DNA of 64,000 nt from Octopus sinensis (Eukaryota). The stretch covers positions 63,314,464-63,378,463 of the forward strand of contig NC_043011.1 of assembly GCF_006345805.1 (NCBI RefSeq). Reading direction: 5' to 3'. The position numbers were made by a program, and so were the translations under genes. The notes under the pieces were generated by a model, which saw only the letters and a list, made by a program, of their open reading frames with translations, had not been told where the DNA came from and did not search any database. Every line of letters starts with the position of its first letter. Position 1 is the stretch's first letter. Of the stretch, positions 340 to 51,038 are shown piece after piece.

Positions 340-428
340 GAATACAGAGCATGCCAAAACGGAAAGAGAAATAATGAACACATTCTAGACTTATTCCATG
401 TAAACACGTCTCCCACATAATGTAGCGT
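340..428 (-). CDS. Gene A exon 3 (secreted six-Cys protein): (A)RYIMWETCLHGISLECVHYFSFRFGMLCI
   Basis: Acceptor ttgtgtttctcttacag, donor gtaagt, open frame in phase 2. Aligns residue-for-residue (C, CL, C, HYF, F, CI) with the exons at 19549-19642 and 46943-47036. Confidence 0.85.
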
Positions 429-646
429 CTGTAAGAGAAACACAAATTACATATTTTGAAAATTCATTGGCATCGTGTACATCATTTAGATTAGGTTCTG
501 AGAATAAATAACTGATTGGTATGTTTTGTATTTATACTTCCTGTATATTAATCACAGACAAAGAGATATATTTAAATACACGCTGCACATTTTAATATCG
601 TTGACCTCTAACTTTTCAAATGTATTACCAAAACACATATATATTT

Positions 647-873
647 CTTTACTACCCACAAGGGACTAAACACAGAGAGGACACACAAGGACAGACAAAC
701 GGATTATGTCGATTACATCGACCCCAGTGCGTAACTGGTACTTATTTAATCGACTCCGAAAGGATGAAAGGCAAAGTCGACCTCGGCGGAATTTGAACTT
801 AGAACGTAGCGGAAGACGAAATACTGCTAAGCGTTTCGCCCGGCGTGCTAACGTTTCTGCCAAATCGCCGCCG
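647..873 (-). mobile_element. tRNA-derived SINE (family with GCCTTTCATCCTTTCGGGGTCGAT core, Meta-domain-like)
   Basis: A-box-like TGGCAGAAACGTTAG and B-box-like GTTCTAAGTTCAAATTCC. Same body recurs at 3933, 4255-4805 and 10295-10590. Confidence 0.85.
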
Positions 874-1106
874 TAAATAATGAAAAGGCTTTAACGCTCG
901 GTCTGGGAATCGAAACCGTGATCCGTATTACCAAAACGCATAATTAGTGATATTAATTAACACATACTTAACTGGCAAGCCTGATTGTAGTTATCAGAAA
1001 AATCTTTCTGAAAATTTGCATAAACTCCATAAAAATGGAAACTACTTAACATAGGTTATCTTTATGATAACCTATGACGTTATGACACTCATTATATGAA
1101 GCGAAT

Positions 1107-1405
1107 GGAGGATCGTGGCTTAGTGGGTGGGGGATTCGGTTCACGATCGTTATGTCGTGTGTTCGGTTCACAATCGTTATGTCGTGTTCTTGAGCAGTGG
1201 CCTTTATTTCACGTTATTCCAGTCCATTTCGCTGGCAAATAGGTATAGTACTGGTATTTCAAAGAGCCAGCAATGTCACATTATGTGTCAGGAGGAATTT
1301 GCTTGAGATCTATGCTAAGTGTATGCGTGTCCGTGGAGTGTTCAGCTACTTGTATGTTTTTTTCCCACGACCAAGCTGATATTTGATTGTGACAACCGGA
1401 ACCCC
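1107..1405 (+). mobile_element. Degenerate tRNA-derived SINE with CORE-like domain
   Basis: Similar to 62219-62548 (ttcttgagcag...tttatttcacgtt..ccagt). Confidence 0.6.
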
Positions 1406-1419
1406 CGACGGAGTACCAG

Positions 1420-1605
1420 AAAGAGAGAGAGAGAGAAAGAAAAGAGAGAGAGAGAGAGAGAGAAAGAGAGAGAGAGAGAGAGAGAAAGAGATTGAAAAAG
1501 AAGAAGAAGAAGAAGAAGAAGAAGAAGAAGAAGAAGAAGAAGAAGAAGAAGAAGAAGAAGAAGAAGAAGAAAAAAGAAAAGAAGAAGAAGAAGAAGAAGA
1601 ATATA
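1420..1605. repeat. Compound purine microsatellite (GA)n-(GAA)n
   Basis: Directly visible; produces the poly-E/poly-S ORF artefacts. Confidence 0.95.
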
Positions 1606-46778: not shown

Positions 46779-46942
46779 CTAATAACAATATACGTTACAA
46801 AAGATGACATGTTTTGTATTTCAAATATGAACTTCATTTGAATGAATGAGAAAAGTTTGTACGCTATCGTCTCACAGAATAAACTAACGTAAGTGTCATT
46901 TAGAATGAATTACGCACAAACAAAGTAAATTAAATTAATTAC

Positions 46943-47036
46943 CGCAGGAATGCAATGATCAGTAAACAGGTTGTGGAAATAGTGACCACAGTCTGCACGC
47001 ACATCTTTTAGGCAATCATAATAATAAATCCAACGT
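46943..47036 (-). CDS. Gene C exon 3: (V)RWIYYYDCLKDVRADCGHYFHNLFTDHCIPA
   Basis: 94 nt, splice sites retained; differs from gene B by N/K and I/D. Confidence 0.85.
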
Positions 47037-47109
47037 CTGTAAGATAAATACAAAAAGGTTTTCATTTCGGATGTATTAATGTCACTGTCAAGAAATGGTG
47101 ATTCTCGAA

Positions 47110-50100
47110 CTACGAGAGCTCACCATGTATACAGTTCTGAAATCGGTGCTTGGCAGAGTGCTTACAAGTTCTTGCATATAAATCATTTACTGATTTATAT
47201 TAAATCGAATTCTCTTGTAACCGAAAAAATCTTCATTTTTTTTTAGCTGTCTTGAAAACAACTTGCAAGTGTTGGAGTTCCACCCTATCAAAACATTTCG
47301 ATTGATCCCAATTGGTGAGCACTCCAGACATGCCACTTTCCTTACCCACCTTCACTATTATGTAGCGCGTGGGTGCATTTTGTCGTGAATATTACTGTTT
47401 GGGGTAGCGCCAGTCTGCGCGTCAATAATCAGCTCATTAACAAGTGTCAGCCCCTTGGCTACTACTGTATAATCGACATAAAGCTGAGTTATAGACTGAA
47501 AATTATCCATTTTGTCTCGCTTATTCGACTTCTTCCTCAACATTACCACCACTCTATCCATGGCTTAAGCACTAGGAATTTTCCCATTCTGTTGCCAGTT
47601 GTAGACGTCAGCCAAGAAACTATCAAACAAGTCTGACAAATTTAAATAAAACTCGAAGGCCAGACCATCCCAACCCGGAGATTTCTCTCTTGCGCAGTCC
47701 GTCATCGCATCCCATGTGTCTTCTGCTGTTATTAGCATTTCGCAGAACACCGCATCCCTGGCTGAGAGGCGCGTCATGTTGCTGATTTAAGAGGTGTAAT
47801 TCACTACCGTCCTAGAATCACTGCGCGCTCCATACAGTTCGGTGAAGTGCCGCCGAAACACTGCCCACTTTGTCTTGCATTGGGTTATCATGCACACGCA
47901 GACTGAATTGTTGATTTGTATCTACGTAGTGCTTGGGACATCCGGACCCATCAAACGGCTTTCGTCCCTTCTCGTCTTAGTGCACGTGTCCTAGCTTTGA
48001 CACCCTAACCTTCATGCTTCACATTTGATAATTGGTCAAGTATCAATCTCGCTGCAGAAAGCGCCGACCGCTATTCCTTCCCATAGAACCACTTCTAGCT
48101 CCGTTATTAGGTCACTCCGTATCCTAGATTCCTCTAATGCCGTTACTAAAATCTATCGCCACTACTATTAGAGGCCGTTTTAAAAGTATCTGCCATCCGT
48201 TGTTTATTGCGCTCGCCATCTGTGAATGGGCTAACTTGCTAACCTGGACTACGAAAGTTTGGCCTACCTGTAAGGACGCCTTTATCTTCCAGTTTCGAGA
48301 ACTGCAAATATCGCCGGCCGTTATTCCTTCCCCTATCGCCACTTCTAGCTCCCTAACTCGGTCTCCCTCTGTCCTAGATTCACCTAACACTATGATTAAA
48401 ATTTACTGCCTCTAGTATAACAGGCCGTTTTAAACCTATTATCCGTTATTGACTATTGCGCTCGCCAACTCTCGATGGACTAACTTGGTAACTTGTTCTA
48501 TGAAATCTTCGCTCGCCAGGAAGGATGCCTTCAGCTTTCAGTATCCAGGACACTCTCAGACGTACAGATCACAAATTTATGTTCCGCGTAACCGACGATT
48601 TTGAAATGAGGATAACTCATACTACTTGTATGTACAGGCCATCTGAATACCATCTGGAAGGCCCGATGCACTTCGACCATCTTCACATTGGTGTATTCAG
48701 TAACTGTCATCCAACTGGAAGGAACGTGGCAGGATTGTGCGGTTTTTACACCCCACTTCTCCTATCAGTATGAATAAATCAGGATGCCCTGCCCCCGTGT
48801 GGGTGTTAACAGCAACCACTCTAGATGTACGACATCCAATGTCACTCTCGTCCACGACCAAAATCGTAATCTGCGGTTCCAGGAAGATCATTCGAACTTC
48901 GAAATCCAAGCTTTCCTACAGAGCAGTGTGACATTGCCTCCCATTCCGGGCCGATAACAGATTCGATAATCTCTTAATCGTCGAAAATGAATATAAATTG
49001 GCGTGTGTCGTAAATTCCAGCCTCACTGGCTGCTATCATATCCAAACCTAGTGACCTGACGTCCTTGAGAAAGCGACCTGTCTTCCAGGGTGGTTTCAGG
49101 TCAGGAACATTTAGACAGACTACTCAGACAATCGCAAATGTTTCACGCGGAAAATCTGTCTGAATTTCTGTGTATGCTTGGAGGGATAGACCATGGGTGT
49201 TGTAAATTGCAAACATTCTCTCAATCTCCTTGTTTCTGGTTGAGAGCCAACAAATATTTGTTGTGTCATCTCACGAGCACTAAATTCGATTTTTCCGTAT
49301 TGGTGACTGTGAGCATGGGGGCTACGTGTAGTGTCTCCATGTGGTTGTGGGTGCATTGATAGATTTAGCTCGGGTAGTGGTGATTGTGCGAATGTTGGCG
49401 CAGGTGTTGTTTCTGTTGTGTCTATTTTCAATGTGTTCGGGGGGTGGGGGATGCTGTGTTTTCGGGTGTTGGTGTAGGATTCTCTGTTTTCTCTTCGTTT
49501 GAGGATGAAATGTTCTCTGTAAGATCTGTCACGGATTGGCAGTGTGTCTGTGTTAGTGTTAGCCTCTTTGTGTAATTGTATGCATGAGACAGGTTACGAG
49601 GAGTCCCTTTTCAATGATACTCTGAGTGCATTCCCCCATTGAAAGAGGCTCAAATAAGTCAGTCGTTTATGGAGATGAGGCTATCACTTCATTAAGAGAT
49701 ATCGGTCGTTGCTATTGCTGGGGATGCAATGTAGTCTTTTTCGGGCAGAAGTCTCTGAGGTGGCATGCGGGACTACAGATGACGTATCTTGATTTCCTGA
49801 CTTCCACGTCGAGACATATTTCCAGCTCTTTGAACAGCAGGGTCACGTCCGGGATCTTCTTGATATCTGGATTTACATAGATTAATAATTTCAAGTTGAT
49901 CTCACACAAAGTTCTCATGCCTCACCCGTTTTACCTCCAAGAGTGACTCTGTTTTATGCACGACACAGATAACAATCCAAAACACGTGTACTCCCCAAAT
50001 TATAGTTGTTATCTTTGGAAGGTAGGTGGGATATTGACGACAAACTCCTCAGGCCACCGAGGTGGCACAGCATGACTTCGGGCGAGACCCTCGCTTTTAA

Positions 50101-50640
50101 AGGGGACCTCAAAGCTGGTAAACTGCTTCCCTCTCTGTATATGTGCCTCATCTATGAAGATATCTCTGAGGAATTCCTCGATGTGACTAATGAAATCAGT
50201 TTCTGCTCTTTTACTTCTTCTCTATTGCCTCTATTATTTCGGTAGGTACGAACACTACAACCTTACATCATCAAAATTAATGATGTCTTTCGCTTTTGAG
50301 AGTTCACGTGTTTTGTCCTCGAGTGTGATTGCAAACATTTCTCTCTTCGTGATCGCTTCATCAGCAAACATTTTATTTTTGTCGTTGTTGTTTTTTTTTG
50401 TTGTCGTTGCTGTTTTTATTCTTGTTACGTCTGTGCTATTGTTGCTGCTGATGGTGGTGGTGCCGTTGTGGCCACTTTACCTGTTGCCACATTCACAACT
50501 ATTGTCACATCTATTTCCCTCCAATCCGCTTTGAATAATAGCATTATTTTTTCCGCTAAAATCCGTAGCATTATTAATGAAAACGCAATATCTTCTACTA
50601 TTGTCACTCCTACCTCTTCTGGTGGCCTCTCATCTTTACT
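47110..50640 (-). mobile_element. L1/Tx1-like LINE relic, copy 2 (retains about 550 bp more RT)
   Basis: KSPGWDGLAFEFY and DNFQSITQLYVDY RT-proximal motifs at 47358-47777. Confidence 0.75.
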
Positions 50641-50938
50641 AATTGTAAACACACACATACATATGTATACATATATATATATATATATACATATATGCCA
50701 CAGGCTTCTTTCAGTTTCCGTCTACCAAATCCATTCACAAGGCATTGGTCGGCCCGGGGCTATAGCAGAAGACACTTGCCCAAGATGCCACTCAGTGGGA
50801 CTGAACCCGGAACCATGTGGTTGGTTAGCAAGCTACTTACCACACAGCCACTCCTGCGCCTATAATAATAATAATAATAATAATAATAATAATAATAATA
50901 ATAATAATAACAATAATAACAATAACAATAGTACGTAC

Positions 50939-51038
50939 ACGCATTCTTTACTGACTAATGGCGATGGCATGGTTGCTCTCCATCTATTCCTGCAATAACT
51001 AATGGCCAGATTTTCACACATGTTTAGAGCAGCAGCAT
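50939..51038 (-). CDS. Gene C exon 2: (D)AAALNMCENLAISYCRNRWRATMPSPLVSKEC(V)
   Basis: 100 nt, splice sites retained; one K/N change versus gene B. Confidence 0.85.

Follow-up and report, generated by a model that had tools for sequence, protein, structure and literature searches.

The 64,000-nt stretch of Octopus sinensis contig NC_043011.1 analyzed here (positions 63,314,464 to 63,378,463, hereafter the window) raises the question of whether the short exons scattered along its minus strand belong to genes and, if they do, which kind of protein these genes encode. Eight minus-strand exons account for three genes, designated A, B, and C, two of which are cut by the window ends, and exons 2 and 3 together encode a domain of ~60 residues with six invariant cysteines. 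We consider it highly probable that the window holds three tandem, same-strand paralogs of an Octopus-restricted family whose products are secreted or glycosylphosphatidylinositol (GPI)-anchored helical binding modules built on these six cysteines. A preceding sequence-only reading of the window had already listed the exons and their splice junctions, all of which were found on the minus strand as it described them, with the spliced peptides as written.

Gene A starts with a 49-nt exon 1 (5255-5303, minus strand, as for all exons below), which codes for a signal-peptide-like hydrophobic start (MISTVNYSVCICLLIV plus the first base of G) and is followed by a GTAAGT donor in phase 1. Its exon 2 (2627-2726, 100 nt) carries Cys1 to Cys3 between a ...tttcag acceptor and a GTACAT donor, ending in phase 2, and its exon 3 (340-428, 89 nt) carries Cys4 to Cys6 between a cttacag acceptor and a GTAAGT donor at 339-334, ending in phase 1. 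If that last donor were left unused, the frame would run via RKSY to a stop ending at 326. In gene B, the 37-nt exon 1 (43393-43429) encodes MTILFLVCLLFV plus the first base of D and ends in phase 1 at a GTAAGT donor, exon 2 (31638-31737, 100 nt) encodes Cys1 to Cys3 between a ttttag acceptor and a GTACGT donor, and exon 3 (19516-19642) encodes Cys4 to Cys6, these coordinates including read-through to the stop. Gene C is represented by exon 2 (50939-51038, 100 nt), which differs from that of B by one nucleotide (K>N), and by exon 3 (46910-47036), which shares its shifted donor and its read-through tail with B and carries the changes N>K and I>D in the domain and S>C in the tail. The window holds just one exon 1 of the B/C type; because the segment 41651-43103 matches 62550-64000, the offset of the duplication that produced B and C places exon 1 of C outside the window, at a predicted position of ~64290-64326, some 290 nt beyond its end.

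Reading the junctions bore out the shared architecture claimed for the three genes, in which exon 1 ends in phase 1 and exon 2, invariably 100 nt long, in phase 2, with AG at all acceptors and GTAAGT or GTACGT/GTACAT at the donors. The cysteine frame C-x7-C-x16-C-x8-C-x7-C-x11-C is likewise identical in A, B, and C, as had been stated. The identity between A and B, previously counted by hand at about 29%, lies at 29-32%, and the domain of C does differ from that of B by three substitutions only. Such exons are hardly produced by base composition. When an exon-2-type match was defined as an AG, 100 open nucleotides containing C-x7-C-x16-C, and a GT, 100 first-order Markov simulations of 64 kb returned a mean of 0 matches against the 3 observed, and exon-3-type matches reached a simulated mean of 0.04 per 64 kb, again against 3. 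A looser pattern scan in all six frames detected no additional family exons in the window, Rfam and transfer RNA scans gave no matches, and polyadenylation signals occur in the window at chance density.

The affiliation of the three genes was addressed with a HMMER profile derived solely from A, B, and C and searched against 1.84 billion representative proteins, which returned nine matches at an expectation value (E) of 1e-3 or lower. Seven of the nine, all from Octopus, are proteins of ~80-370 aa with the same cysteine frame, led by the protein designated P0001 (E=2.1e-13) and followed by six others with E from 7e-8 to 4.5e-4. Five of these are RefSeq entries of Octopus bimaculoides named 'uncharacterized protein' (LOC1282497xx-1282499xx), all located on chromosome CM046618.1, and two are 'hypothetical predicted protein' entries of Octopus vulgaris (OX597831.1). 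The two remaining matches, a metagenome repeat protein (P0005) and a Frizzled-type repeat protein aligned over only 18 residues (P0008), were discarded as chance. A wider profile added A0A0L8GPE1 (P0010) of O. bimaculoides and its O. vulgaris partner CAI9735828, and an 11-sequence profile recovered the relatives with E from 3.6e-28 to 5.8e-18. The closest relatives thus comprise LOC128249836, LOC128249786, LOC128249883, LOC128249853, and LOC128249936 (accessions XP_052830341, XP_052830245, XP_052830395, XP_052830353, and XP_052830521) together with A0A0L8GPE1 in O. bimaculoides, and CAI9735826, CAI9735828, and CAI9735829 in O. vulgaris, all of which share the cysteine frame, the exon plan, the leader, and the tandem layout with A-C. 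The six cysteines are invariant in 17 of 17 aligned sequences, A, B, and C included, with spacings that conform to C-x7-C-x(14-16)-C-x8-C-x7-C-x(11-12)-C. The annotated paralogs are only 19-42% identical to A, B, and C, and A is the only one of the three with a clear ortholog (78-81%). Among the credible relatives found so far, the family appears confined to octopuses. It is not new to databases, as it is already annotated, although uncharacterized, in two octopus genomes, and the novelty claimed for it by the sequence-only reading did not hold, given that the gene models labeled 'uncharacterized' or 'hypothetical' in O. bimaculoides and O. vulgaris include at least 15 paralogs. An exact look-up of P0010 in the protein collection gave no match, and searches of the literature by accession or keyword found no paper on the six-cysteine family. 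One uncharacterized signal-peptide gene of the octopus visual-system atlas, obimac0019980, was considered and set aside, as it appears to encode a larger, different protein.

Mapping the annotated relatives to their loci exposed a common plan consisting of a signal exon (phase 1), a 100-nt exon (phase 2), an 89-nt exon (phase 1), and one or more tail exons. This plan is followed by P0001 (112/100/89/47 nt), P0004 (37/100/89/17 nt), P0006 (37/100/89/104 nt), and P0011 (40/100/89/23 nt), and the 37-nt exon 1 of gene B finds its exact length in P0004 and P0006; P0009 is a variant built from five exons of 91/94/91/27/78 nt. In all, six mapped relatives have a plan of this type, one of them with 94 nt in place of 100 and one with 91 nt in place of 89. 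Because annotated relatives map with the same exon lengths, the 100-nt exon 2 can be taken as a hallmark of the family, which, to judge from these gene models, normally includes a fourth exon encoding a variable tail. Gene A agrees with the plan in its first three exons, gene B in exons 1 and 2 and the start of exon 3, and gene C likewise, with its exon 1 beyond the window. Since the relatives and the O. bimaculoides ortholog of A continue after the 89-nt exon 3, gene A probably extends into one or more tail exons ~1 kb away, ahead of the first position of the window, and the GTAAGT donor that follows its exon 3 is conserved in the ortholog. A fourth exon for B and C was sought in the window with the tails of the relatives and no credible candidate emerged; a weak one at 7890-7855 was rejected for lack of an acceptor site. 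Hence, the exons originally proposed stand and the three-exon gene models are incomplete, with a fourth exon of A expected before the window, exon 1 of C beyond it, and the usual exon-3 donor lost in B and C.

The annotated relatives belong to a large tandem array in both octopus genomes. In O. bimaculoides, five loci sampled from 49.42-49.88 Mb of CM046618.1 (122 kb in total) contain three family genes each (n=15), which share orientation within every locus, at a density of about one gene per 8 kb over an interval of at least 460 kb; were genes spaced like this throughout, there could be several dozen of the family in the interval. The description of a tandem and expanding family is supported by this array and by the recent duplication of B and C described below. 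The array is organized in two orientation blocks (loci L004 and L007 versus L001, L003, and L006), with the genes at 49.42-49.65 Mb on the reverse strand and those at 49.77-49.88 Mb on the forward strand. The two O. vulgaris loci (L002 and L005) have only repeats in common with the window. From one of them derives P0002 (CAI9735829, 373 aa, OX597831.1, L005 from 27521), in which three six-cysteine domains precede a duplicated unrelated stretch; this model is probably a fusion of neighboring tandem family genes and not one gene.

Conserved gene order could be established for gene A only. Positions 200-6785 of the window are collinear with 3201-6660 of the O. bimaculoides locus L001, at 79-90% DNA identity and on the opposite strand as stored, and the ortholog of A found there sits directly upstream of LOC128249836. 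Its first three exons, beginning with MILTVNYSACICLLII in exon 1 (L001 4624-4672), match A in 62 of 79 residues (78%), with the 100-nt and 89-nt exons in the same places. The annotated ortholog gene spans L001 4624-8947 with a product of 176 aa, and the sole splice chain found to fit these bounds adds a 278-nt exon encoding a K/E/D/T-rich repeat tail and a 15-nt last exon. The comparison of A with this ortholog yielded a nonsynonymous divergence (dN) of 0.097 and a synonymous divergence (dS) of 0.107, that is, a dN/dS of ~0.9, and none of the cysteines is altered. Of the 17 codons that differ, eight belong to the loop between Cys2 and Cys3, and exon 3 is nearly unchanged. The paralogs, at 19-42% identity to A, hold only the six cysteines invariant, and both comparisons agree with the fast evolution that had been proposed for the family. 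Intron 1 of gene A (2727-5254) measures 2.5 kb compared with 0.3 kb in O. bimaculoides (L001 4673-4968), and its extra DNA includes a direct repeat (4292-4553/4476-4737), of which a further copy lies in intron 2 (642-859).

Genes B and C are recent tandem duplicates, and the family is still duplicating. Self-comparison by BLAST delimits a unit of ~27.4 kb that contains gene B (17905-45317) and continues directly into its partner with gene C (45318-64000+), at 92-97% identity. The identity is highest around exon 3 and intron 2 (96.6-97%), intermediate near exon 1 (94.5%), and lowest in intron 1 (92%). This uneven distribution suggests that an older duplication was followed by gene conversion or unequal exchange. 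The copies also differ by an insertion of 8.1 kb in intron 2 of gene B (23425-31560, plus strand), absent from C, which lies within an (AAT)n run near the exon-2 donor of B and is composed of two elements resembling long interspersed nuclear elements (LINEs), antisense to the gene. The second of these presents a 222-aa open reading frame (ORF) at 27389-28057 followed by an intact 1073-aa reverse-transcriptase ORF at 28102-31323 and, judging by this intactness, may have been recently active; an exact look-up of the LINE ORF in the protein collection gave no match. LINE-like copies of 88-93% identity are also found at 36.9-38.4, 40.8-41.6, and 55.8-58.6 kb.

We then considered what the encoded domain may look like. 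The mature domain of A, modeled with AlphaFold2 from an alignment of 12 family members, reached a predicted local distance difference test score (pLDDT) of 92.6 and a predicted template modeling score of 0.78, with helices at residues 2-14, 16-21, 28-41, and 47-61; the first model, which included the signal peptide and the tail, had a pLDDT of 77.6. AlphaFold, which had been named together with Foldseek in the sequence-only reading, gave a confident helical domain, and two models compared with the PDB and BFVD had no Foldseek match at E<1. Profile searches led to the same outcome: a Pfam scan of A, B, and eight relatives returned noise only, and the lone match in the PDB sequence-profile search, a glycogen synthase, was dismissed as chance. 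Saposin-like, GDNF/GAS1, and RGM_N domains had no Pfam match above noise, RGM_N appearing at E=0.37 and E=3, far below the cut-off. The statement that the cysteine frame belongs to no named family is thus upheld by the Pfam, PDB-sequence, and Foldseek searches.

All members open with a hydrophobic stretch of at least 10 residues (mean Kyte-Doolittle hydropathy 2.6-3.7) followed by a small-x-small site. At the other end, the C-terminal 10-mers of P0003, P0006, P0007, and P0009 are hydrophobic (Kyte-Doolittle 2.05-3.27) and follow polar stretches rich in Ser, Gly, and Ala, resembling GPI signals, whereas members other than these four have short or charged tails, with A, B, P0001, P0004, P0010, and P0011 lacking a long hydrophobic one; for A, B, and C, no GPI-like tail was found within the window. 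Secretion, predicted from the hydropathy of the leader, therefore describes the family only in part, as several paralogs have GPI-signal-like tails. Taken together, these features outline a possible mode of action. The leader would route the protein into the endoplasmic reticulum (ER) and would be cleaved off behind GSA/AMS in A and AAA in B, which are of the small-x-small type, and the six cysteines would pair as three putative disulfides that staple a compact three-to-four-helix bundle. The tail exon would set the fate of the product, a short or charged tail leading to release and a hydrophobic one, as in P0003, P0006, P0007, and P0009, to a GPI anchor at the cell surface. Fast turnover on a fixed cysteine scaffold in dozens of tandem genes would fit a diversified extracellular binding or recognition module, which may act outside the cell as a ligand or receptor modulator.

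Could the exons instead be chance open frames or repeat fragments? LINE, Penelope-like, and microsatellite repeats abound in the window, which would suit such an origin, but simulated matches stay near zero for both exon types, the annotated homologs in O. bimaculoides and O. vulgaris share exon lengths and phases, and an ortholog of A is conserved at the equivalent O. bimaculoides position; these results refute it, and we assign it a practically negligible probability. A weightier objection concerns B and C, which might be young duplicates, non-functional or decaying, leaving only A-type genes at work. The family donor site after 89 nt of exon 3 (19554 in B) reads CT in place of GT in both genes, and the five nucleotide differences in the 189 nt of coding sequence fall in three codons, all three of which alter the amino acid, including the I>D beside Cys5. 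At 2.6%, the coding divergence is about that of the introns (~3%), leaving no detectable constraint since the duplication, although so low a divergence offers too few changes to detect selection either way and the differences are too few to prove loss of function. An alternative donor lies five bases on, where GCG is followed by GTAATT (19549/19548 in B), and its use would give a 94-nt exon 3 with a phase-0 end, for which the annotated paralog P0009 sets an example; a shifted exon-3 donor nonetheless distinguishes B and C from the annotated paralogs. Left unspliced, the exon 3 frame of B would read PAVINLIYFVSA up to a stop ending at 19516, the version in C having FVCA. B-type proteins are annotated in none of the protein sets searched, the best relatives being 18-28% identical to B, and 8 kb of LINE sequence lies beside the exon-2 donor of B. 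Both genes nevertheless retain open frames, the six cysteines, all acceptors, and the exon-1 and exon-2 donors, and B keeps the scaffold in spite of being only ~29% identical to A, from which we infer that its lineage was long under selection. Decay of B and C is regarded as unlikely. Like the changed donor and the unconstrained divergence of B and C, several other points count against our interpretation of the window as a set of three family genes with secreted or anchored products. Signal peptides and GPI tails were recognized by inspection, the -3/-1 rule, and hydropathy only, and expression of the window genes is predicted from gene models in relatives. The dN/dS near 1 of gene A could equally mean weak constraint. 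The 176-aa reconstruction of its ortholog is provisional because the exact sequence is absent from the protein collection. A word-index protein search with A and B gave no match, a null that is not evidence of absence but a limit of the index, because the index missed even the O. bimaculoides ortholog of A.

The nature of the product also admits other readings. The domain is helical and held by disulfides according to the prediction, as are mitochondrial intermembrane-space proteins of the CHCH (twin Cx9C) type, and A0A0L8GPE1 carries in UniProt the source name 'IMS import disulfide relay-system CHCH-CHCH-like Cx9C domain-containing protein'. None of the spacings (x7, x16, x8, x7, x11), however, forms a Cx9C pair, a hydrophobic ER-type leader is recognized by inspection in every member, and current Pfam gives eight members no CX9C or CHCH match even at E<=10. 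The octopus family is accordingly no member of that group, an identity that these data refute and that we hold to be extremely improbable. A reading as freely secreted effectors (pheromone, salivary or venom component, antimicrobial peptide), as opposed to cell-surface or paracrine binding modules, deserves more attention and is in our estimation somewhat unlikely. The family resembles typical secreted effectors in being small, having a leader and three putative disulfides, expanding in tandem, and evolving fast, and the six members without a long hydrophobic tail would conform to this reading; four paralogs, on the other hand, bear GPI-signal-like tails, which are unusual in venom or pheromone peptides, and no similarity to toxin, pheromone, or antimicrobial peptide families was detected in Pfam, PDB sequences, or Foldseek.

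Among known systems, two invite comparison with the secreted or GPI-anchored binding module that we favor. Attractin of the mollusc Aplysia and the Er pheromones of Euplotes are secreted, water-borne helical proteins of ~40-60 residues with three disulfides. Their cysteine spacing differs from that of the octopus family, Foldseek against the PDB, where these structures are deposited, gave no attractin- or Er-type match at E<=10, and such pheromones are not known to have GPI tails or large tandem arrays. Ly6/uPAR domains are small and rich in disulfides; a handful of exons suffices to encode them, the signal having an exon of its own, and the genes lie in tandem and include GPI-anchored as well as secreted receptor modulators. 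Tandem arrays, the signal exon, and the mixture of GPI-anchored and secreted forms make them a functional analogy only, since the Ly6/uPAR fold is made of beta strands and has 8-10 cysteines, the octopus domain being predicted to be all-helical with six, and no Pfam or fold match connects them. A bolder proposal, which we rate as quite improbable, is that an Octopus-born three-helix, three-disulfide fold without detectable relatives was multiplied into dozens of tandem genes with interchangeable soluble and GPI tails to act as a diversified set of cell-surface or secreted receptor modulators in the manner of the Ly6/uPAR 'prototoxins', possibly with octopus-expanded receptors of the nervous or chemotactile system.

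The finding is of a modestly interesting lineage-restricted family and not of a categorically new kind. A main source of the biology peculiar to cephalopods lies in small proteins, secreted or tethered, of lineage-restricted families, hardly any of which has a known function. The octopus family is compact and can be synthesized easily, has a confident predicted fold to which the PDB offers no structural relative, ranks among the denser tandem arrays of the octopus genome, and would switch naturally between soluble and membrane-anchored forms. These properties make it a practical case for studying the origin of new extracellular signaling and recognition modules. For annotation, the model of the ortholog can guide gene A, and B-type genes would need models guided by RNA sequencing.

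Two features of the window outside the three genes' exons complete the description. A 172-aa ORF at 12493-13011 on the minus strand encodes a GIY-YIG nuclease domain (Pfam E=1e-6) and most likely represents a Penelope-like retroelement fragment. In the introns, long (AAT)n/(ATT)n arrays occur repeatedly, at ~33450-33780, 38320-38580, 41610-41880, 43950-44190, 52710-53010, 57070-57320, and 62550-62780, where they yield spurious poly-N and poly-I ORFs.

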